This document shows positions 17,245 to 43,185 of a DNA stretch of 64,000 bases, piece by piece; position 1 is the first letter of the stretch; each line of letters opens with the position of its first letter. The position numbers and the translations under genes were made by a program. The DNA is from Fimbriosthenelais zetlandica (lineage: Eukaryota). The notes under the pieces were generated by a model. It ran no database searches and was not told where the DNA came from. It was given only the letters and a program-made list of their open reading frames with translations. Location of the stretch: contig OZ365112.1 in the NCBI GenBank assembly GCA_977030845.1, positions 22,630,001-22,694,000 of the forward strand. Reading direction: 5' to 3'.

Positions 17245-17695
17245 GATATTCAAATGTGACATTATTATATAAATCATAAATGCGTTAGTCTATTAGCCAT
17301 TTGCCCTATTGTATTTCATTGACGAAATCTGTTTATCTAGTTACAGGTCAAATTTAAGTGTTTTATAATAATAAATGTGTATTGCATGATCCTCACGATT
17401 TAAATAAATTTGCCCACCACCCCGCCCCTTTAAGCTTTGTACTACTACTACTTTAGCTATCTGTCATTATTTAGCAATTGTATGTAATACCATCATTAAT
17501 TGGTCCCACCCGTTTCCCCTTGCAAGTGACAAGTGTGATAAAATATAATTTACCTGTTAAAATGAATGTTGTTACATGACTAAGATAGATTGTCTTATTG
17601 TGTTGTAGGTTTGCTGAGACACCTCCGAGTAAGCAGCAGATGAGTAGGGTGGGAAGTTGGCGACTGTTGGCTGGCATTGACTACTCCAGGATGTG

Positions 17696-20600
17696 ATGGA
17701 CACACGCTACAGGGGTAATCAACAGGGGCTTGGCCCGCGCCCACCTCTACACAACCAAGACCAGGCCATGGATGTACAGGGTAATCCTGCCTTAGGTCAC
17801 ATGGGCCTCCACCACAACCATGTCAACGATGGTGACATGGGTACTGGAAGCAAGGTGATGGAGCAGTACTACAATATGGCTGGTCACCGTGCTGCAGGCA
17901 TGTACAACCCCCAGGCACAACACCACCACCAGGCACAGGGCATGAAGGGTTATGTGGCTAACATGGATGGTGGGCAGTACAACCAAATGATGGCCTCACC
18001 ACCTGGAATGCATGTCACTCCTGGAGGTAACATGTCACATAACATGGCCATGTATAAAACACATGCCATGATGAGCCATGGTGCAGGCAATTCTCAAGCT
18101 GCTGCTATGGGCATGGGACCTGCATATGGCAGAGGGGGAGCTGTGGCCGGCGGTGGAGGGGCAGGGGCAGGAGGAGGGGCAGGAGGAAGTGGTGGTCGTG
18201 GTGGGGGTATGCCTCAGTATGGTAATATGATGCAACGTGGAATGCCTCAACATAATATGGCAGGTATGCAAGGTGGCCATGGTAATATGATCCGCATGCA
18301 ACAACCTATGGGCATGAACACCATGGGTGGTACAAGCCAGCAGGGCATGGTGGGCATGCATGGTCACTACGGCAACCAACAGTATATGGATATGGCCGGC
18401 CAAGGTCATCGACACCATCAAGGTCATCCTACTCACCACCACCATCACCAACAACAGCAGCAACAGCCGCAACAACATCCGCAACCACCACACCAGCAGT
18501 ACTTGGGATCACCTAACTCGTGCATTATGTCACCACCCCCACCTCAGCAACAGTCTCACCAACAGCAACAATTGCAGCACACCAGTCCTAGCATGGCCCA
18601 GCATGGCTACTCTCCCAGTGTTAAACACTACCCTGGTAACATGGCCATGGATGCTAGCACCCAACTACAGCAAACACCACCACAAAACCCACAAACCCAA
18701 CATCCACCACATCCTCTCCATCATCAGCATTCTCACAACCAGCAACAACTTCAACATGAGCAACATCAGCAAGCACAACCTCCACAACCGCAAAATAGGG
18801 GACCTCAGCCTCAGTACTCCCATCACGGTATGCCTACTGTCAACCTGGATCAGACTGGGCGGGCTTTAGGCGCCCCGTCTCAACAGTTGCCTGATTTCCG
18901 TACTCTAGCTTCAGCGTCCACCATTAGGGGCAGTGATACTGTATCTAACAATATGACAAATATGGGGTACTTAGCATCAGGGACGAATATGGCCTGTGAT
19001 AAGTCAATGGACAGTACGGGGAGGGCCAGCCTGCAGGCCAGTGGCAGGATGCCTCAGGAAATGGCTGGTGACGTGGCTATGGCATCGAGGCACAAGATGC
19101 CAGGGATGCCACAGGCAATGCAAAAACCATTTCCTCATTCTCAACCGGGAGTTGCACCACATCAGAACTGTAAACAAAACTATGGGAGCCATGGTCAAGC
19201 AATCCATGCTAACCATGTTAATCCCATGGCCTCACAACAAGTACAAAACGACCAGATGATGCACCATTTACGGGCAATACAGTCAACTGCCGTCACATTA
19301 AATGTCACCTCCAGTAGAGTGGTCACACAGACAGCTTCTGCTGTGTCACCAGTGGTCACCACAACTCATGTAAGCCCTGTAGTTAGTCATGCTGCTCTCC
19401 AAAATCCAACACTCACAAACTGCTTGAAGTTAGGTCCTTCTCTACCACCGCCAGGTATGGCACCAGATCAAAACTGTACATCTCAACCAACCTCACATAA
19501 TGGTAATCTAGAATATTCTAATAGCTCTCTAAGGAAATCACCGGCAGCTTCAATATCTGCGAGTGACGTACCAGTACAAACTCACCACCCGCCACAACAA
19601 ACTGTGTCTTTAGCCACTTCCAAAAGTGACCCTTCCCATGCAAATCAAGGCTCCTCCATTCCAGCCTGTCTTGCCAAATCCGGCGGCTCTAGCTTGGCCT
19701 CCTCCGCTCCTGCGATATCTGCTTTACTATCTGGGAACCGGGGACCCATGCTGCACAAAGTTCCTCCTCACACTCAACAACTGGGCCCTCCCACTAATAG
19801 TTTGCGTCCGTCCGGGCCTTCCCTAAATGAACCTCAAATCCAACCTCAGCTTCGACACCAGCAACAAGGGCAAACCAAACAACAACGCCAACATCATCAT
19901 CAACATAATTATCATCCACCACCACAACAGCAACATGGTCAGCTCTCTAACCATCAGACTGAGGAGGAGCTGGCCACATCAACGAGCCACAAAGCCACCG
20001 GTGCTGGCTTTGAGAAGGAGAAGCAGGGCAGTGATTGCGCCTCGGCCAGTGTTATATCTGTCACTGTGCCCTTTGGTTGGCGACGAGTGGCAGAATCAGG
20101 TGCTGTGGTGTATTACAGTGCTAGTGGAATCAAACTCACCTCATTGTCACACATAGTGCAATACCTACAAACTGATGGTTCCTGTAAGTGTGGACTCGAG
20201 TGCCCCCTTCTAGTGGATAAAGTATTCAATTATGATCCCCAGGTGAGTGGTCATTTTTTTTCTCATTATTTAATAAAAAGATGATGTGAGGGTATGTTCA
20301 GTTTAGAATCTTGTACATCTTTTTCTAACAGTATTTTTTACTTAGTATATTCCATGTGTACACCAGAATGATGATGCTGACTTGCTGCATATTGTCAATT
20401 CGATTTTCTTGAGGTTAAAGTTTAACTTTATATCTTTTCAGGTGGCATCTAAACAGTGGAACAGTGTTGATCTGTCCCATAACGATGATCTCTCTAAACT
20501 GTGTAATCACAAACGGAAAATAATTGCCATGGCAACATTCCGAAAGTCAGCTCTCCAACGAGAGGATAGGCCGTCACATGACCGAGGCAGGTCGAAAAAC

Positions 20601-23600
20601 ACAGGTAAAAATTAATTCTCTGATTGATTATATCCCTCAACTGAATAAATGATATGTACTATTCATCTGCCCCCAAAATTAGTAAGATAATAGAAAATGA
20701 AATATAAATAATTTGTGCAACTAAATTTATATAAGGCATCTAAATTTATATAATGTTGACAGTAAATTATGTTTTAATCAAATTTCAGAAGGCCAATTAC
20801 AGATGAAAGGTAATGGAAACCCGTACGAGCACATGCTGATGTCACGCCTTTTGTCACAAAGGGAGAAAGTGAGTAACTCAGAGCAACACCACCACCAAAG
20901 AAGTACGCCAGCATGGGAGAGTGCCAACGACACAGAGGACAGGAAACCCAGTGAGAAACAAGTGCTTGAACACAATCTAACAAACAATCAAATGTCCAAC
21001 AGTGTTAACAGCATGGGTAATGCCATCTCCAGCGACCAGCACAATGTAGAGGCACCTTACTCCAATGTAGGGATCGTTAAACAAGAGAAGGAGGATAACC
21101 TCATGGACAATGAGGGTGACAGGTCAGATTATGAGAAGAAACCAGACTTGAAGAGTATGGCTCAAAAGGTGCAGGCAGCATTGAGGAAACCAGATTGGAT
21201 GGGTACGTGTGGCTTGAAAAGTGGACGTGGCAGGGGGCGGCCGAGAGCTCAATCAGACACCAGCACGTTTAATTTAAAACAAGAGCAATCCATGCCAAAC
21301 CACCATCCACGCTCCTTCTCCCACAGTGATGCCTACTCCATGCATCAGATGAACACTAGTCTTTTTAACTCCCCTGTTATGCAGAGATCTACAGACAGTG
21401 TGATGAGTCAGTCATCCCAGCATAGTGTTGAGAGTGATTATTTCCAGGATGATGAAATGATAGCCAATACAAATGAACAGCATCTACAAGCAGCTTCAAT
21501 GGACTATCATAATGCACATAGACATGATCCTAGCATGATCAAGCAGCAAATGCAAAACCAACAGCAACATCACCCACATCCTGAGCTCTACCATCAGTCC
21601 GGCTCATCTTCTGTCTACCCAGAAGCTAACCTGCAGATTCCCGGCCTACCGACCATGGAAAGCTGGGCAGAAATGCAGAAGGTGGGGAGACGAAAAGTGG
21701 GAGCATCCAAACGAGGAAGAAGGAAAGTAAACCATTTCCTCGACCGACCACCGTGCCCTAATGTTGACGTCCGACACATGCAACAGGATGGAAAGCCTGG
21801 ATCCGCTGGTGGAGGAATGCCATCCTTTTTTGACAACCCAACTACATTCCTTGCCCAGCAGTCAGCCATGGTGGCTAATTCCCTAGGTAGAACTGACATT
21901 CCACCCGAGATCAACACAGACCATCACGGTGGTCTGGGCTCTCAGGTTAGTCCAGCTCCTTCAATGTCCTCACTTTCAACGAAAAGTGCCACCCCTACTC
22001 CACTCTCCAGTCCTGGCCGCCCATGTAGTCAGAATTCACAGACCTCCACTGGCTCTGCATCCAAGAGCTACGGTTCCAGTAACCCACATGGTCCTGGCAA
22101 CTCGCTGTTCCAATCCTCGCCTGGCGTTCCTTCTAGGTCTGGCAGTTCTGGGATGTCACGCCTTTCTCCCCGTCAAGTACAACAGATGGAATTTCAAAAG
22201 CAGCTTCATATCTTCACCGGTGGATCGTTTCCCAACGCCATGGCTGGAATTGATCCAGTCACAGCTACTCTCATGTCCCCAAAAACTGTCAAAGGAAAAG
22301 CACAGAAAAATGACGGGCGTCATAGCCCCGAAAATATCAAACTCAACTTACAGACTGTACTCAATCCTAAAAGCTCTGCGAGCTTCCCTGCAAGTAACTT
22401 GTTGTCTGCTGCAGCACGGGCTCAGGATGAGAGCCGTATCAAGGCGACAAGCTCCCCTGACTCTACCATCAAACACAATCATAATCAGGCTGTTCCACCA
22501 ATGAGAAACATGGTCCTCTCCCCCCAAGAACATACTCCAGTGCCTCCTGGAGAAAGGGGTATGCATCATCAGATACCTCATAACCACATGGGAAGGGTGA
22601 ACAATCTGCCCTCCAATAGTGGTATGCCATTCATGTCCAATCCTGGCCATCACAACCCCATGATGTACCAACACATGGGACAGGGAGGGGGTGGTAACAG
22701 TGGTATGAACCCACAAGCCATGATGAGTATGATGCCTTCATCTGGAGACCAACATCAGCCTGGTCTTCATATGAACACTGGTCTTGGTAAGATGGGTCCT
22801 GGACCAGCCCTACAACATTCACAGTCCCCCAGGTCTGCCCTTACCCAATACCAAAAGGAGCAAACTCCCATTGAAAAAGTTCAAGACATGATTTCGGGTT
22901 TAGAAGCTGCGCAGAATGCCATTGTGGCTGCACATGCTGCCGCTACTGCTCAGGAGTCGTTGCCTAACAAGGCTGATGGTACATGGCCACCTAAACGGAG
23001 AAAGTCATCAACGTCATCAGACGCACGACAGAGTGTCAGCCGTTGTTCAGATGGTGGAGCGTCTACTGAGGCTTCCATGAATATGGGGCTTGGGAATGCC
23101 ACCCCGGACAGCATCAGGAGTGGTCCACCCAGCCATCAAGGTGAAATGATGATCAATCAGAACATGTATGGAAACATGGCTCTCACCCATTCAGTGGATG
23201 GAACAATGGACCCCAATGGACCAGTGCCTGGGGGTGTCCTCAATAATCCACTGGCTTCATCCAATCAGGGAATGAACCGGCTGCTGTCTATAGTCAATAT
23301 GAATATGTCAGGTATGCCAGGTGGACACCCATCATTGCCTCATGGTGGAATGCCTAATGCTGACAGTAACATTTCTCCAGGCCTTGCCATGTCCCAGCTA
23401 AACAACCCACAACTCATGCAGCTTGTTGGCAATGCTCCTCAGATTCAGAACCCGTTACTCATATCTAACTCTATCAATATGGACTCAATGCCCACCCAAA
23501 TGCAGGCACCCCCTCCGAAAAAGCTTAACCCAATTGAGCTCACAGTGCAAGAAGTTTTCAAACAAGGATGTACTGAATCATCCAGTAATCAGCCAGTTAC

Positions 23601-26600
23601 CCAGCAGGCAGATTCCACCAAGCCGAAAGAGGCTGTGAGCAACTCGCCTCCAGAGAAGGATCTGTTTGCTCGGAGTAAAAGCAGTACTGAATTGATAAGA
23701 GAAGCTTTGAAAGCAGATGATGAGAAATATCCAGTCTGCTCTGAAGCTTTTGAGAAGATGAATGAAAGCACTCAAGGTACTGAATCAAAGAAGATGGAGG
23801 GCATGCCTCAACCTGGGGTCCGACCTGAACACCTCAAGGTACAGACCAACGCTGTACTGCCTTGTGGGCCAGCGATGCCTGGTCAGACATCACCTCGCGG
23901 TCTGAGAACAACACCAGACAACAAGCAGAAGCGGATGCGAGAACGTTCACGTAAAGCTAGCACGCCTACAATAGCTAAGATGCTCCAGGCGGCCCAGGCT
24001 CCACAGAACAAAAACCCATCCATGGTCATGCTACCCAACATGCAGACCCAGCTTCTACAAGTTGTCAACCCAGTTCTCAGCCAGATGGTGGGTCAGATCC
24101 CAGAGGAAGGCATGAATCCTCAACAGCTCATGTATCTACAACTTGCGCTGCAAAATCCACAGCTTGATGCCCAGATGCTCCAACAAAACCAGGAGCTCCT
24201 CAGTGCTCTGGGTATGCCTCAGGTCCCGGACAAGATGAATGCCAATCAACCAAACTTTGGTCAGAACCCAGATATGGGGGGACAGGTCCAGAATCCCAAT
24301 GATATGAACCAGTTGAACATGCTGCAGAACTTAAACATGTTACCTGCCCTGGGAAGCATGAATCCTGCTTTATTACAAATGTTGCAGTCTTTACCCAATG
24401 CTGGCTTACCTAACATGGCAGCCTTGCATCCTCAGCTCCAGCAGCAGATGCTGAAGCAGATGGCCCCGTTCCTCCTACAAAACCAGCAGCTGCTGCAGCA
24501 GTTGCAACCGCAGCAGGCCCTGGCCAATTCTAGCAATGTTACGCCAGGTGTCAATTCAGACTTGGAAAAGCTCTCAAAAGATCGTAAATCGGCAGAGGAA
24601 AAATCATTTGCTGCCCACGATACTCACAAAGTGCAGAACGATTATAACCCTTCTGCTTGCTCTAAGTCCTCAGGTCAGCACTTAGACAATACATCTATTG
24701 AGACCGAGGACAACCAACCACAAACCCCAGTCCGTAGCTTTGATAGTGCTGCAGGTGAGAAGTTAAGATTAGACTATAGTGTTGAGAAACCCTTATGTTC
24801 AGCGACTCATACACCTTCTGCCAGCATAACGTCTAGTGGCAGTAGTAGTAGTCATAGTAGTCATTCTCCGCCTTTCACTACGAAAATACCAGCTGATCCA
24901 GGTCGTGTTATGAATGCTAAGCCATCTTCTCCCTCTGATTCCATTCCAAACCCTGCTAACTTGACTGAAGCTGTCACTGCGGTGGTCAGCAGCCAGGACG
25001 TGTTTGGGGATGATGAGGATGAATCGCCACATATCGAACCTCCACTGAGAAAGTACGCAGTCAGGAAACACCACAATCACATGTGTAACCTAAGTCAGAA
25101 ACTATCCACTAATCCAATTCAGAATTCATCTTCCTCTTCTGTGCCTTCTTTATCGCCTTCAGCCAAATCTCCCATTGTACGGGCCTTGACTTTTGAAACG
25201 CCACCCAAATCTCCCGAACCTGCAGAGGATGCTGCAGAGGAAGAGCCTTTAAATGCAGCAGGCGAGGAGGAAGAGCCGAACGACGAACACCAGGTGAGCA
25301 TGAACAGCATCGGTACCAACACCTGTGATGAAGGCAGCCTGGAGAACTCACTGGAGGGTCTACAGGAGGTCGACGACGACGACAATGGAGACCCACTGGA
25401 GGAGATGGAGGAGGATGGAGATGAGGAGGCGGAGGAGGAGGTGGCTATGGGCATCCATATGGCATCTACCGCTACCATGACGGATGAGGAAGGTCTCACT
25501 GATGGCGATGGTCTGCCTTATACCTCCCCCGATGCTGAACTGATGGAGAGAAAAGAGGACGAGGTTGATGAAGACACAGATGTGGAGGAAGCCGTGTCAG
25601 ATTCAGGAGAGTACGATGACGGGCTTGAGGGAGATCTGATGGATGAAGATCCATATGAGGAGGTAGACAATGAGGACCTGGGTGAGGTTCAGTCTGCTAC
25701 AGACACTAGTGACGTACAGCAGGTGGTAGATGCTGATGTAGAGGACAGTCAGGGTACCGTATTAACTGAGGACTATAATCCTCTAGTTCCCAAGGAGGAC
25801 CTCGACTCAGTCCCTAGTAGTACAGCAGAGGAGAGCATACCTACACCAAACGAGAACCATGTAGCAGAAGGCGATCAGATGGAAGGAGAGGAAGAGTTGT
25901 CTCCAGTACAAGAAGAGCCGTGTGAAGCTGAGGGCTTGGTGGGAGAGGAGGGCAGTGGCCCTCCACCACCAACATTAGATGATGAAACTGATGGCAACAA
26001 TGAGGTGGAAGGTGAGTTAACAATAACAAAGTTCTGATCAAGGACATTATATTGAATATATCTCTCTTACAAACGAATAAGGTTTTAATGCACTGAATAG
26101 AAAGATTCTGGAAGGACACTTTATAGATGATCTGTTGAGATTCATTTAGTCACAAGGCAGCTCTGTAGTTTATATAAATATGTTTTGAATTTCCTCTTTT
26201 TCACAGATGAATTTCTGGAACCAAGCACTGATAATCCTAAATCCAGTACTCGAACCTTCAATATTGGAGACTTGGTATGGGGGCAGATCCGCGGCTACAC
26301 ATCCTGGCCGGGAAAACTTGTGGATGAGTCTTCTGTGAAAGGAAACCATTCAAAAACAGAGATAGGAAAGGTGAGGCAAATATGTTGAAGCTAAAAACTA
26401 TTGTTAAGCATCAAATGTTCATTTCCGAATTGTAATACCCTAACAATCTTAACTTACAAAAACTGTGTTGCGATTTTTCCCCAGCTTTGGGTCCGGTGGT
26501 TCGGAGATCATTCCTTCACACAAGTGGAGCCACAAGAGTTGAAAACCTTGTCTGAAGGTTTGGAGGCCCATCACGATGCTAGGAAAAGGTATCGCCGGTG

Positions 26601-27065
26601 AGTAGATTTTATTATTGCTTCATCGATAGATCCGGGATTTATTAAGATGAACGATTCTGGGATTGGACAGATAAAATCTAGCCAGTGGTAAAAGTTAACC
26701 TATCAATTATTGAATTTTTGTAATTTACCGCGCATACCGGAATCTGCAGTAATTTATTGGATCCAGCAGACTTTTAATTGATTTTAAACTTTTGCAGTGG
26801 ACGCAAGATGAACACAAGCCTCGAGTCAGCGATCCAAGAAGCAATGATGGAGTTAGACCGCCAGACTGAGGCTGCGTCCTGTTCCATCGACAAGCTGGAT
26901 AAGGTGATACCACAAACCACCACCCTGCCACCTGCACCTCTTGAACCACCTCTCTCTCCACCACCACCAGACCCCACATCTGACATCTCAACTCTTACCT
27001 CTCCTACTCCACCCACCATCTTGCGAGCTGGCAAAGGGCGGCCTGGCAAGAAACGGAAGAGGTAA
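17696..27065 (+). CDS. MBD5: MBD5/6 ortholog (MBD + PWWP), about 2825 aa, mostly low-complexity
   Basis: Exons 17696-20242, 20442-20604, 20789-26011, 26207-26370, 26485-26597, 26798-27065 sum to 8478 nt in frame. MBD5-type MBD VPFGWRR...SGIKL...[26 protein letters not shown] followed by [14 protein letters not shown]; [25 protein letters not shown]...[10 protein letters not shown]. First ATG is 17696 (the ORF track start at 17693 is GTG). Confidence 0.93.
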
Positions 27066-33573: not shown

Positions 33574-36500
33574 TTAGATCTGAAAACCAAGAGGAAAATG
33601 AGAACGCACCATAAATATTATGCTGTGCATATCAATCCAGCTATTCTCATATAACTTTTCTTGTGAGTAAAAGTTCGTGTATTGGGATTTCTATGTTGAA
33701 GGTTAAACCTACCTTAAGATCCCAGATGATGAGCTTGGCATCTATTCCCGAAGTGGAGAACTTGCGAGCATTGCTTTTGTCCCCTTCATAGATGGCCACC
33801 TGACTGTAAGAAGTGAAAATGCTACTAATGAAATCACAACTAAACATCTTAGGCCTTAAAATGAGGAATCCTGGAAAACGTAGAGTATTTATTCAGTATT
33901 ATCTAAGTATGTCACTCACGTGATGGTGTTCTGATGTACGCTGGTCAGTTCAGTCTTATTGTCATCCATGGTTTGCCCTCGGGTATCCAGTGTCTGGAAA
34001 TGTTTCATGGCCCTGAAATAAAACCAAGGCCAATGACTGATCAACTTTTAAATATCAATGAGGAAGAGACTAAAGAAACATACAGATTTGTCTGCCTCTG
34101 GCTATGCTGTGTGTGTCTTCCAGGTTTCTCAATTGCCCTTACGTTCAAGTAGCAATATCAAGTTAATTCTTACGTGAACTTGGTCGATGCTGAAGCCTTG
34201 CCTTCATCCAGTTTGCTGACAAACTTCAGCTCTTGTCCATTGTAGTGGTAGTGCATAGGGACGCAGTCATGTCCCTACAAAGAGACAATCATACAAGGGG
34301 GTTTACAAATAATGTAAAAAATACACCCATCAACCCAGGCCCCTTAAATTGAAAGGTAATACATGTACAACTTACAGCCACAAGCAGGGCACCTTCCTTC
34401 ACCCATGTACAGCTTACAAATGGCAGAAATTTGGTCTTGATGGTCAACAATCTGAAGAAAAAAACAGAAATAGAAACGTCAATACAACTTATATTGTATG
34501 AGGTTAGCAACCAGTTGTTGCCATATATATTATGCTTCATTGTCATAATTTCCTAACCATATCTTTTCCTGATCACATAAAAGACACAAAAGTACTTACT
34601 GCTGATCAGAGGCAGGGTTAGCAATAGAGATGCTGGAGTCATGTCCCACCCAGGCCAGCTGGTCTCCGCCCGCAGAGAAAGACACATCATGTACCCAGCC
34701 ACCTATCATACCAATCATAACACTGACAATCACATTCATGTATTATTCATTGATATTATGGAGCTTCAAGTTTTATCCTTATCTTTCAACAACGCCAAAA
34801 AAGTTTACTCTTAATAGTACAACATCTTCCTTAAAACACATGCATATTACTGTCCCTCGACTAATAGTATAGATTTGTGGAAAGAAATGAGATATTGGGG
34901 TCACCTAATGGAAAATGTATGAACATAAACCTGTTAAATTTGTAGAACCCATGCAGACTACAGACACTCAGGTAGAAGGGTAAAGTACTACGATTTCACT
35001 CTTAGAACAATTCTTTAGGATCTAATTAACCCATAATAACCAATGTCCATTAAATCCTTCGTCCCCACGCCTATGAATGAATGAAATAGCTATGACAACG
35101 GCTAAACCTAACCACTACACTGTTCATGCAAAACTTATCTGACCGATTCCAAGAAACTATGGAGCTGACATTAAAATTCTCTAAATTAATTGGAACCGAC
35201 CAAATAGTCAATGTCGATGCTGCACCGCACATAACTGTCCCAGGTCCCATTAATTAAAAAGATTTCATTTCAAAACTTGAGCAGGAGTCGAAACAGTTGG
35301 GGTAATTTGGGTTGGGATGAGTTAATGTAAAGGGACACCATTGCAAAATATGGCTTTTGTCATATTCGTACAGCATAGAAAGTAATGACATTATGTCCAA
35401 GCTTTGGCTAAAGTAATCCATAAAGGGCAGAATATTAAACGCTGCCAGCAGACGCTCACGCGCTGACTGCCATTGTGAACATTGACCCCTCTATGAGCAC
35501 ATACACACAACTAAGAAAATCCCCAGATTCCATCAAGAGTAGCAGCCATCATAGAATATTATGAATAATTGAAAATTTATATAGAGAATCATGGAAATTC
35601 CTATACTTGTTTCTAGCTTTAGCTTCATAAGATAACTCTGCTGCCCTTGTTGAATCAATTCAAGAATATAAATGGGAAATTAAACTACATATCAAATTCA
35701 AAATGAAACATGTCATCAAGTCCAAAAATAACCAGGACATGGTGCAGTTAAACTAACACTGATCACCCACCTTTCTGCGATCCTGAAGTTTGGAAAAAGA
35801 GTACGCAAACAAATGAAAACCTAAAGTCGTTTCAACGAGCTTTCAGTAAATCAAAAGTTATTTCAGATTACAATAAATTAATTATTGACGAGCCAACTGT
35901 TAAGAAAATATCTGTATCACCTTAAACTGAAAGTGAAAGAAGTGCAAGGGGTAATCTACTTATATAATTCAATATATTTATAGGGTAAATTAATTTCATC
36001 TAGAATAACTTTTCATATGGTCCAGAAAATATTACACATCTACTGTAGAATCCTGATGGAGTCAATGGTCAAAAGCTACAAGGCATAGACATCATGTGTA
36101 GACACTGATTCCTGACATATTAACAGCTGGGGACTGACCATGGTCCAGTCATTCCAGGTCCGTTCTTCACCTTTACAAACTTGTCATTCAAGTTTATCAA
36201 TGTATGTCTTCCAGTGGACATAGAAATGAGGTGGAACAAATGGTCAGAGATAAGAGAAGGCTTGATATCTTGTTTTAGAGGACAAGCCATTCAGAAGCCA
36301 TGCATGATTGTGCCTTACGAGTAGCAGAGATGTCTTACGTGAGCCTGTGTATCTGTTGACCATTATTCTCACCATGGATTATAGGGAGTGAAGACACACC
36401 TCCGCCGTTTGAGTACTCAGCCATCAAGTTTCCAAATGTCATCTTCTTCCCCCATGATGTGGCAGCAGGCTTTTCATCCACCTCCTTGATGTAGGCAGAG

Positions 36501-37857
36501 AACACTCTGTCAACACAAACAATTATTACTCAATTACTCAACCATACTCGGCAACCTTTAGCCAACATAATATTTCATTTTCATTGATAATTGTGACCGA
36601 TTAAAGATATGACAAACCTGGCTTTAAAATCGCTGGAGCCTGCAGCAATCAATACGTTGTTAGGATGCCAGTCAAGGCTGAAAAACAAGAACATATTCAA
36701 CACCACTCAGTCACTCAATAAGAGAATATAAATTGACGCAATTATTTAATTTGAGTGTTATATAGTATGGTAGAACTCAATACTGAGTTTATTGAGTTCT
36801 AAACTCGGCACACATGCCAGAGCTGAGTAGTAAGGAAACATACCTAGTAACAGTTGAGCGGAGTGGCTTCTTGATGTGCTTGCTCACCCACCAGTCATTC
36901 TCCTGCTCAAAGTAACATACGGATATCAGTCTGGCACTGCTTCCAACTGCAAACTTGGTCTCTGAAAGAGAAAATGGCAATTTTTAAAACTCACAAACCA
37001 ATGACAAATATCTGATCATATAGATAAGTATATAAGCCTTAGGTAAAACTAAAGCATATCAATACTGCATGCTTTTACCATGTTGAACAAATAATAGCTC
37101 TTGTATGACAAGTGCTTCTTTGTGACAAATAGCTTTTGGATGACAAATTGTACTGTGTATTTGTCCTTACCAAGAGGGGACCACTTGACATGAGTGGCAG
37201 CTCGGTTAATACGCAAGATGACCAGAGTAGGTTTCCATGTTCCCTGCTGCTCCGTCCACACATAGGCATTACGATCCTGAGATAGAAAAAAAAATGTTTA
37301 TAACAATTTTATATAGGATCAAGGAACTGGGGAGATCCCATATGTCTGAATTAAATTTATTATTTACCATACATTATCACTTTGAAAAAAAACTTACCGC
37401 ACCACATGTTACAATGCGGTTGCTGCGTGCGGCCCAATCAATCCCGGTGATTCGCTGGACATGCTCAGTTAGGGTAGCAGTCTGCTCCCACTTGTTACCA
37501 ACTCTTTTATAGATGTGTACTTCATGATTGTTGGGTGACATGGCCATCTCTGCAAGGTTCAAACTCTTAATACAATATATCCAATTAATAGTTTCCAAAC
37601 AGATACATAACTTTAAAAAAAATAATTTCCAGATATTTTACATATCTAGACCTACTTCATGGCTGATCTACTTCAAGGGAAGAACCTTCAAATATTGCTT
37701 CGATTTTAAGTATTTTTTCTCATGAAAATGATAATTGGGCACTTTTAAAAATTGAATTTATGAAACTCAAATGAAAAAAGATAGACTTACGCGTTCGATC
37801 ACCGTTGAAGGCATGGCATGTAATTGGTGTAATACCAAAACTGTGAGTTTCTGGCAT
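33574..37857 (-). CDS. ARPC1A: Arp2/3 complex subunit 1 (p41-Arc, WD40)
   Basis: [22 protein letters not shown]; [10 protein letters not shown]; [21 protein letters not shown]; [22 protein letters not shown]; [10 protein letters not shown]; GHDCVP; [13 protein letters not shown]. Pre-duplication ARPC1A/B co-ortholog. Terminal exon uncertain (predicted Ile-stop at 33579-33574). Confidence 0.95.
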
Positions 37858-38848
37858 TTTTCCTAATATTTGTTTCAACCTGATAACCTGTGTGAGAGAG
37901 AACAAAATCTATTATAATAATAATTCGTAATTTAATTTTCTATTTCGTTTTTTACTGTGATCCTATTAAATCTAGTTTTGATAGGACCAATATTCGCTTT
38001 CCAAAGAGCTATGCAGGTCTACGTCCCTTGGCCATTGATTCCACACACACTCCGAACAGTGAGTGTACGGACTGGTTTCACAGATAGTTACTGCAGTTCA
38101 GCTGTCAAACAATAGGTGGCAGTAGTTTCGCATTTTATGCGTGGAACCAGCCGATCATTCTAGTTTTGACTGAAATGTTGATTAATACTATAGCCTGATC
38201 CCTAAGGTCGGGTTCCACCCACCAAAGGTTTAGATAGAATATCTGAAATAAGGGAGATCTCCCACAAAAGGTGCAGGATGCCGGGGGACACCCCGGGAAT
38301 GCCGGGGGACACCCCGCCTTGGATGTGGGAGGATCCTCCCCCGGTAGGCTTACTTATCCGGGCTTCTGTCGGGACAGATCTATTAAACGTTGAACAAATT
38401 TCAATATATTTTGTATGTCTCATATTACTGAATCAATGATATACTCACAGAACCTTTGTAAAGCAGCAAGTTTTCCCGAAATTCGCGGACTCTGGGCAGT
38501 CTACACGAATTTCCTTCTCAAGATAAATGCGGAAGTGGATGTAGGTCACCAGGTCGGCGCTTGAGTTAGATTGCTGCTGCGAAACGTGGTCCTGCGAAGT
38601 GGGTCCGGTGCAGCTCTTCTACTAGAAACAGTCATACATGGGATAAACTTTTTAGAAAATAAATTATTGATCTATTTTGGATCATGTATGTTATGGGAGG
38701 AAGTATACGGTTGTGTATCTAAGAAAATACAACAAGAATTAAGGGGACTTTTTCCTATTTGTTTCAACCAATGAGAAGCTTACGAGTCAGCTGCCTCGAA
38801 ACTAGGTCACGAGGTCGGGGAAGCCCTTGTTGTTTCCTGTCATTCAGC

Positions 38849-41145: not shown

Positions 41146-43185
41146 TCACTCACTTACATCACTATAACCCATGTTACAGTCCAGAGGAGTTGGACCATAA
41201 TCGAGTGATGGCCAAGGAGATGAATTAGAATTGGGGAGATATGATGAAGTGCCAGCGAAAGCCCAAGCCTGGTTGGCTTCCTCTGCCATCATTAATTCCA
41301 GTTGTCCACCGAGCTCAGCTGGGCTGTTATCGATATTGTCAGGTTCAGTCTCCATCATTAGACTATCTGTTGGGGAATCGTACAAACGTGGGGTACCTCC
41401 ATAGAAGGGAGACCCACTGCCCTGTGAAGATCCAACACTTTTAGGTGTAGAGCAGTTGCTGTTCTGGCTGAGCTCAAACCTTCTACGCATCATAGCTATG
41501 AGCTGAAGCCTGGGTGAATCAGCTGGTCCTGAGATGGATCGCAGGAGAGCTGGAGATGGGCTCCTGGAACTTGAAGATGAGGGTGTTTGTGGCGGTGTAT
41601 TGTTCACTTTGGGTGTGGCTGGTGTAGCAGTTTGACTGTTTGGTTCATAAGTTGACATGGTCGCATCAAAGTGTTCCAGTGAGAATGGGGTTCCATACAT
41701 GCCATGATCATTAAAGTCCATCTCATGGCCAGGCGTGTTTGGGACTGACCAAGTGTTAGGTTGATCAGGCAATGAAACGGGTGAATCATCAATCCCCTCA
41801 ACACTGGCGTCATCCAGGTTGGGGATATAGGTGAGGTTTGTTACATCGAGGTCCCTGCCTGGTGTCATTGGAAGGGAATCAGTCTCTTCAGTTTCAGAAA
41901 TATTGATTGTCTTTTCACACATTTGACTTTGTTCATTATTATTTGGGTCCATGGTATCAGCTGCAGTCTTACCAGACTGCTCACTCTGATTATCACCATC
42001 TTCCTCTCCTTCAGATTCATTTTCTGAAAAGAGGAGTGTATCATCACTTGAATCATAGAGTATATCGAAGCTCTCGCCATTGGCTTTGCTCTGATCTTTC
42101 CTTTTAATGAACGGATTGTCTGGAGCAGGCGGGTTCTTCAGGTATTCTGGACTAAAAGGGCTATATACAAATGGCCTGGGAGAATACTCTTGGCTGCTGA
42201 GTACTTCTTCCATTGGTGGTGATTCGAATGAATCCCGAACCAACTGTTCGGTAACACAAATCTTATAAGCTGGAGCATGAAGTGGAGATTCCTCTGACTC
42301 GGAGATCTGCCGCTTTAATTTGCCTCTCACATTGTCTGGGTAGTGACTGTTTCTAGACGTTTGAACAGAGCTGGCCTCAGTGGGTTTGTTGCCATTCCCA
42401 TCATCGGATGGAGCAGAGGTGCCATTTGTATTCAGATTAGTACTGGTAGGAGCAGGAGAAAGGTTGGACGGTGAATTGGGCAAGAACACCGGAGAATGCG
42501 GCAGAGGGACCCAGCCTAGAGCAGACGCTGGATGTTTCGAAGTTGAAGGAATTGAGGGTGGATAGGTGGAGGCTCTGTCCAGTGCACAAGAATGGTCTGA
42601 TGGCTTGATGCTGGAGCAGGGAGTAGGAGCGGGAGGAGAATCAGGAGTAGGTGATTCTGAAGTTAAATCACTTGTAGGATTCTGATGAGGTTGTTTATTC
42701 TTTAAATTAGATGGGTTGTCAACTGTGTCGGCAGCTTTGGATGATAAGTTTGTGGAAGGTGGTGGAGAGGGCGGGGTATCAGATGATGGGGAAAAACTTG
42801 GTGGACAGGATGAAAAGTTTGGTGAATATAATAGAGAAGTTGCGAAATATTGTGGAGAGGTCGGGGAATAAGAGGGAGAGGTTGGGGAATATGAGGGAGA
42901 GGTCGGGGAATATGAGGGAGAGGTCGGGGAATAGGTTGGAGAGATTGGGGTATACATTGGAGAAGTCGGGGAATAAGAGGGAGAGATTGGGGAATAGGGT
43001 GGAGAATTTGGGATATACATTGGAGAAGTCAGGGAATATGTTGAGCCATATGCTGGTGAGGAAGGGAAATATATTGGCGACTGTGGTGCGAGTTGTGGGG
43101 AAAAGGCATTTACTAAAAGCCAGTGGGTCTCCTCGTTCGATTCAACACCTCGGATAGGTGAAGATTCTCCTACTGCATCAAACAT
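41146..43185 (-). CDS. Orphan 679-aa Ser/Pro-rich disordered protein with an N-terminal Pol II CTD-like heptad array
   Basis: 2040-nt uninterrupted ORF in a genome where non-coding ORFs rarely exceed about 130 aa; candidate splice acceptor about 19 nt upstream of the ATG; no RPB1 catalytic motifs; convergent with CNPY4. Confidence 0.8.
42808..43071 (-). repeat. Coding 21-bp tandem repeat encoding YSPTSPS-type heptads
   Basis: Tyr every 7 residues from aa 50 to 120 (11 units), plus YFPSSPA at aa 39; three perfect YSPTSPS at 42933-42871; core DNA unit TATTCCCCGACCTCTCCCTCA. Confidence 0.95.

Follow-up and report, generated by a model that had tools for sequence, protein, structure and literature searches.

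Analysis of a 64,000-nucleotide stretch of the Fimbriosthenelais zetlandica genome (assembly GCA_977030845.1, contig OZ365112.1, positions 22,630,001 to 22,694,000 of the forward strand; hereafter the window, from whose first letter all positions are counted) revealed a minus-strand open reading frame (ORF) that looks like a real, intron-free protein-coding gene. [quoted passage not shown] The heptads vary mostly at positions 4 and 7 and keep the residues that define a CTD. We tentatively take CTD mimicry, in which the array would be engaged by the factors that read and write the Pol II CTD, to be the most likely mode of action of this protein, at somewhat less than even confidence.

Sequence of the heptad array

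A sequence-only reading of the window had described 11 in-register heptads near the N-terminus of a disordered, free-standing 679-amino acid ORF. The array was found exactly as quoted, at amino acids 50–126, and aligning it to long CTDs lengthened it to approximately 15 units once the decayed heptads at amino acids 29–49 and 113–140 were counted. Tandem Repeats Finder showed that the underlying DNA between 42819 bp and 43038 bp repeats every 21 bp, with a higher-order period of 63 bp. Tyr1 was invariant in the 11 units, Ser5 was present in 10 of them and position 2 was occupied by Ser or Thr in nine. A phmmer search of PDB chains with the protein returned RPB1 CTDs only, over nine stretches and with E-values down to 1e-73.

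The core units differed from each other by 0–6 of 21 nucleotides and are therefore not fresh identical copies, although two units of the array were identical. Between amino acids 50 and 112 the departures from YSPTSPS at positions 1 to 7 numbered 0, 2, 1, 3, 0, 0 and 5 respectively; positions 4 and 7 account for eight of these 11 departures (binomial P = 0.003, or P = 0.008 when one shared variant was discounted). Pairwise comparison of the seven core units at the codons for Y1, S2, P3, S5 and P6 gave 24 synonymous and 6 non-synonymous differences, i.e. a ratio of non-synonymous to synonymous proportions (pN/pS) of 0.10, compared with a value of 0.79 for positions 4 and 7, all counted among units related by duplication, as in the 63-bp period, and not among independent events. 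This pattern of substitution among the heptads suggests selection on the CTD-defining residues. The codons TAT (Y1), TCC (S2) and TCT (S5) were nearly invariant across the units, which shows that all present units go back to one founder. Either capture from RPB1 or expansion within a Ser/Pro-rich frame may have given rise to the array, and the choice between the two needs the RPB1 gene of this genome.

The repeat structure of the DNA also bears on a different explanation, namely that the ORF encodes a generic Ser/Pro-rich disordered phosphoprotein whose heptads are proline-directed (CDK1/MAPK-type) sites, generated by expansion of a 21-bp minisatellite in an S/P/T/Y-rich coding region. Such a protein would have no link to Pol II and may not be nuclear. 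We consider this explanation possible and, on balance, rather unlikely. It would account for the array being a tandem repeat with a higher-order period and a pair of identical units, yet the chance that YSPTSPS is encoded by a random 21-mer is only about 6e-9 per frame, as calculated from codon degeneracy. The composition of the 679-amino acid protein (18% Ser and 15% Pro) agrees with it, as do the SP/TP sites, described as many in the sequence-only reading and counted here as 54, which lie along the entire length of the protein and not in the array alone; Tyr1, however, plays no part in proline-directed kinase sites and is nonetheless the invariant residue of the array, and the amino acid changes avoid exactly the five positions of the CTD code. 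Outside the array the protein offered no homolog that would point to transcription, and no classical mono- or bipartite nuclear localisation signal (NLS) pattern was found in the 679 amino acids, so that a nuclear location is not predicted; both observations sit comfortably with a phosphoprotein of this generic kind.

Coding potential and gene structure

The ORF begins with an ATG at 43185 bp, preceded by an A at −3 and, 12 codons upstream, by a TAA in the same frame. Its open frame spans 680 codons. When this DNA was shuffled 500 times no open frame exceeded 237 codons, and elsewhere in the window, over 42 kb, open frames reached 141 codons at most. Across the 540 non-repeat codons the GC content at codon positions 1, 2 and 3 was 0.51, 0.51 and 0.39, and G made up 0.27 of position 1 against 0.14 of position 2. 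Synonymous codon usage was compared with that of the exons of an MBD5-like gene elsewhere in the window; this revealed a correlation of r = 0.65 in the ORF's own frame and of 0.12–0.52 in the five other frames. The observed/expected CpG ratio of the ORF (0.41) was similar to those of the MBD5-like exons (0.32–0.38) and the ARPC1 region (0.41), whereas intergenic stretches gave 0.57–0.70. In an invertebrate whose gene bodies are methylated, CpG depletion of this kind would be the pattern expected of a germline-transcribed unit. No second copy of the ORF sequence was present in the window. A 148-amino acid ORF on the opposite strand (42711–43157 bp, plus strand) is merely the reverse-strand reading of the heptad repeat and does not count as evidence of a gene.

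These properties bear on the idea that the ORF is non-functional or very young, having formed when CTD-coding DNA of RPB1 was copied beside unrelated sequence, and that it is unexpressed or unselected. We regard this as improbable. The ORF is intron-free among intron-rich genes, the flanks of its array are decaying, no ortholog was found and the exact protein is missing from the collection of 15 billion, all of which such an origin would explain; the last of these points is weightless, as the genome of the window is itself not in that collection. A 2-kb frame with neither stop codon nor frameshift is, on the other hand, far beyond chance, its 540 non-repeat residues have codon periodicity and match the codon usage of neighbouring exons in a frame-specific way, and its CpG depletion resembles that of the gene bodies nearby. 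Additionally, neither the N-terminal 28 nor the C-terminal 540 residues showed similarity to RPB1.

The 3′-end of the ORF leaves room for a longer gene. A perfect GTAAGT hexamer, expected by chance about once in 4 kb, lies right before the stop codon and could be the donor of an alternative or 3′ untranslated region (UTR) intron, or of a downstream exon. In the last case the ORF would be the large first coding exon of a gene with more exons between 38 kb and 41.1 kb, which might add a folded domain. We think it doubtful that the hexamer is used in this way, as no convincing minus-strand coding ORF was found between the start of ARPC1 (37.9 kb) and 41.1 kb, and the AATAAA at 40218 bp fits a plain 3′UTR of 0.9 kb. 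A first exon of this type is compatible with CTD mimicry and not opposed to it.

AlphaFold2, run without an alignment, predicted the protein to be fully disordered (mean pLDDT 36, no helices), in agreement with the disorder claimed from the sequence alone. The only marginal structural element in the model was a beta-hairpin at DILYD...TLLFS, inside the acidic tract. The smaller elements listed by the sequence-only reading were also located: the second YSP cluster proved to be an isolated pair of heptad-spaced units, the acidic tract had a net charge of about −23, and the basic KLKRQIS lay within a 12-residue segment whose R-x-x-S and acidic CK2-type serines may, judging from their motifs, be kinase sites. 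The 13-residue motif described as amphipathic was present in the C-terminal part as a hydrophobic and basic segment, which the single-sequence model did not show as a helix. The coordinates of all of these elements are given in Table 1.

Comparison with RPB1

The array is free-standing, as the sequence-only reading had described it. None of the RPB1 core domains (Pfam RNA_pol_Rpb1_1 to RNA_pol_Rpb1_7) was found in the ORF, and when 12 long RPB1-type proteins were aligned by tblastn with the whole window, only the region between 41569 bp and 43209 bp matched, through their CTDs. The array resembles real CTDs in its tandem YSPTSPS units, in the retention of Tyr1, Ser2, Pro3, Ser5 and Pro6, in variation falling mostly at positions 4 and 7 and in being disordered. 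It differs from them in position, as the heptads occupy amino acids 29–140 of 679 and not the C-terminus, and in being followed by 540 unrelated residues with no acidic CTD tail. It also differs in length: functional CTDs have 26–52 heptads, about eight being the minimum for viability in yeast, whereas the array has seven intact units (approximately 15 with its decayed flanks).

A misassembled or partial RPB1, the identity that would have undone the sequence-only reading, was rejected, as the window holds no RPB1 core and the frame continues into the 540 unrelated residues; a transposon or virus insertion was likewise rejected, as no direct or inverted repeats flank the ORF and its neighbours on either side are ordinary host genes. 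The idea that the first 28 residues derive from a linker of RPB1 was considered and discarded, since their resemblance to protein P0041 was not significant. The rare YFATS heptad common to the ORF and P0041 appears coincidental.

Searches for related sequences

A phmmer search of 1.84 billion representative proteins gave 1005 matches, and the best 150 of these all matched through amino acids 4–210 only. Amino acids 141–679 had no match to these best 150 sequences by local blastp and phmmer; a weak ortholog that lacks heptads could lie among the rest. A word-indexed protein search with amino acids 130–679 gave no match, the scores of an ESM Atlas feature search did not exceed 0.72 and amount to noise, and scans of the JGI metagenomes and IMG/VR gave no relatives. 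No ortholog of the non-repeat part, which the sequence-only reading had proposed to trace in related genomes, was found in the protein, metagenome and viral collections searched. The exact ORF protein was also absent from a collection of 15 billion proteins. This absence carries no weight, as the best match in the protein collection to the 1744-amino acid exon of the MBD5-like gene was only 55% identical, from which it follows that the genome of the window is not represented there.

The searches hint weakly at a gene that is confined to a narrow lineage or evolves very fast, because the two nearest sampled species had no ortholog near the top of the phmmer list; this assumes that an ortholog in those species as similar as their MBD5 exon would have ranked there. 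In the assembly of a relative (ERZ25767047), whose MBD5 exon is 47% identical, approximately 17 kb downstream and approximately 18 kb upstream of MBD5 were surveyed. A cyclophilin exon was found in place of ARPC1 and only non-coding blocks matched the window. Gene order around MBD5 has thus not been kept and synteny was unusable for finding an ortholog.

Other features of the window

The features of the ORF and the neighbouring genes are listed in Table 1. The start of ARPC1 is 3.2 kb downstream of the stop codon of the CTD-like ORF. The MBD5/6-like gene has a weak MBD ending its first giant exon and PWWP exons after its second; in two other assemblies its exons were 35–55% identical to those of the window and its PWWP exons 82–90% identical. 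Conserved blocks flank this gene (about 15700–16130 bp and 30599–30665 bp of the window, aligning with L003:2800–3220 and L001:21657–21722 of the relative's contig). These blocks matched in several frames and on both strands, and so resemble conserved non-coding or UTR elements more than exons.

No Pfam family and no useful Atlas match was found for the seven-exon gene, which has a GT donor-like site (CAG|GTGAAT) after its stop codon. In the HELT-like gene, a 233-codon ORF (51241–51942 bp) seems to continue through an intron that is in frame and separates the end of the bHLH from the Orange domain. A search with the HELT exon found nothing at database-size E-values, and Rfam gave no match in the window.

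Table 1. Features of the CTD-like ORF and of the surrounding window
Feature	Position (bp)	Strand	Remarks
CTD-like ORF	41146–43185	−	679 codons + TGA, single uninterrupted frame (ORF listing)
N-terminal 28 residues	43102–43185	−	non-repeat; no significant match to RPB1 linkers
Three decayed heptads (21 residues), N-terminal side of array, aa 29–49	43039–43101	−	from alignment to long CTDs
11 in-register heptads, aa 50–126	42808–43038	−	underlying DNA is the 21-bp/63-bp tandem repeat
Core of 7 consecutive Y-[ST]-P-x-S-P-x heptads, aa 64–112	42850–42996	−	3 exact YSPTSPS
12-residue basic segment (KLKRQIS-type), aa 289–300	42286–42321	−	putative R-x-x-S basophilic-kinase type site, then acidic CK2-type serines
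Second YSP cluster, aa 334–347	42145–42186	−	isolated pair of heptad-spaced units (14 residues)
Acidic region, aa 371–470	41776–42075	−	net charge about −23
14-residue segment within acidic region	42025–42066	−	marginal predicted beta-hairpin, pLDDT about 53
Hydrophobic/basic 13-residue segment, aa 560–572	41470–41508	−	C-terminal part; no helix in single-sequence model
GTAAGT, consensus 5′ splice-donor hexamer	41152–41157	−	starts 3 codons before stop; candidate donor
AATAAA	40213–40218	−	first canonical one past stop (about 0.93 kb); candidate polyadenylation signal
TATATAA	43636–43642	−	about 455 nt upstream of ATG; candidate TATA element, pattern match only
MBD5/6-like gene	17693–20284, 20803–26037, 26185–27065	+	two giant low-complexity exons (863 and 1744 codons)
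ARPC1 (Arp2/3 complex subunit 1)	33647–37905	−	one exon matches human ARPC1A/B, E = 1e-17
Seven-exon gene	46216–48169	−	short introns; coiled-coil segment, then about three transmembrane helices
HELT-like bHLH-Orange gene	50435–50560, 51277–51942	+	divergent from the two minus-strand genes

Discussion

We propose that the window encodes a CTD mimic. The gene would be intron-free and of narrow lineage, and its disordered, Ser/Pro-rich product would carry an N-terminal CTD-type array in which Tyr1, Ser2, Pro3, Ser5 and Pro6 were retained while drift altered positions 4 and 7 as well as synonymous sites. Factors that read or write the CTD, among them CID domains, capping enzyme, Pin1, Ssu72/Fcp1-type phosphatases and CDK7/9/12-type kinases, recognise one to three heptads. 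As they need no more than this, an expressed protein that reached the nucleus should be bound and phosphorylated by them wherever it met them. Two outcomes can be envisaged: the array may titrate CTD factors away from Pol II, or it may tether the acidic and hydrophobic remainder of the protein to Pol II hubs. Because the array keeps both Ser2 and Ser5, it would be a substrate or sink for these factors and not a dead-end inhibitor.

Several observations weigh against CTD mimicry. The only Pfam match in the ORF, to the Rpb1 repeat (PF05001, RNA_pol_Rpb1_R), scored 14.8 bits (E = 0.036), under the gathering threshold of 20.3 bits, and no more than seven heptads are intact. The pN/pS values share the dependence among duplicated units given with them above, and the missing NLS counts weakly in the same direction. 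No search made here found an ortholog in which retention of the heptads could be followed, and neither the CTD-like ORF nor ARPC1 was near MBD5 in the part of ERZ25767047 that was surveyed.

Proteins other than RPB1 that imitate the CTD have been described. In Caenorhabditis elegans, PIE-1 carries two CCCH zinc fingers together with one or two YAPMAPT motifs, which are non-phosphorylatable as Ala occupies positions 2 and 5. The analogy to PIE-1 drawn in the sequence-only reading holds as far as both proteins have CTD-like heptads, and is otherwise loose: the protein described here retains Ser2 and Ser5 in a long array of phosphorylatable consensus heptads, Pfam found in it neither a zinc-finger family nor any other domain, its model is disordered throughout, and outside the heptads the protein searches found no similarity to any annotated protein. 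According to work cited in PMC3745420, both PIE-1 and synthetic analogs of the CTD bind cyclin T1 and block elongation. PIE-1, Drosophila Pgc and ascidian Pem-1 are mutually unrelated, lineage-specific proteins that interfere with Ser2 phosphorylation of the CTD in germline precursors (bioRxiv 10.1101/2021.07.12.452040). Yeast Trf4 and Sen1, as described in PMC4186968 and PMC7110113, have CTD-mimicking Nrd1-interaction motifs that sit in the site by which a CID domain binds the CTD. Like the array, these are CTD-like linear motifs in non-polymerase proteins; unlike it, with its tandem consensus heptads in a disordered orphan protein, they are single short motifs within enzymes that have folded domains.

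Non-RPB1 proteins with CTD-type arrays were also found among predicted sequences. Five had no other domain (P0029, P0030, P0035, P0087 and P0135), and in others the array stood beside an FHA domain (P0057), a BTB domain (P0096), ankyrin repeats and a SOCS box (P0100) or RING/IBR domains (P0130). As in the ORF described here, the arrays, of between 3 and at least 20 Y-[ST]-P-x-[ST]-P-x heptads, were not C-terminal and no polymerase domains were present; outside the heptads they had nothing in common with it. All are unnamed predictions, some of which may be gene-model chimeras, and at least P0030 was a single open frame in a eukaryote-looking contig. No paper describing a non-RPB1 protein with a CTD-type array was found in the literature searched. 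A CTD-type array outside RPB1 thus appears to be a rare but recurrent, uncharacterised architecture.

One of these proteins, P0035 (L004:8001–9905), has 634 amino acids and about 20 CTD-type heptads, and is encoded on a 12-kb metagenome scaffold with 14 short-spaced genes, nearly all of which had no Pfam family. The scaffold looks as if it came from a large virus or from a very compact genome; P0035 could be a viral CTD mimic.

A more specific role for the protein of the window would be that of a spiralian counterpart of PIE-1, Pgc and Pem-1: a maternal, lineage-specific protein whose phosphorylatable heptads trap CTD kinases (P-TEFb/CDK7) in a high-affinity sink, or travel as a passenger of Pol II condensates, and so impose or time global transcriptional quiescence in early embryos or germline precursors. 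We consider this very unlikely as it stands, and a germline role for the protein described here is pure conjecture. If true, CTD-targeted repression would have been invented independently for a fourth time, and for the first time with a true copy of the CTD.

The published mimics in the literature searched (PIE-1, Trf4 and Sen1) were only short or non-phosphorylatable. A separate protein with at least seven consensus heptads would naturally lend itself to competing for the entire CTD interactome or to serving it as an adaptor. If expressed, it would show, as an experiment of nature, how cells cope with a soluble CTD or make use of it, and would be a candidate transcription-quiescence factor outside nematodes, flies and ascidians. 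The recurrence of CTD-type arrays in unrelated predicted proteins suggests that it may belong to an overlooked class.

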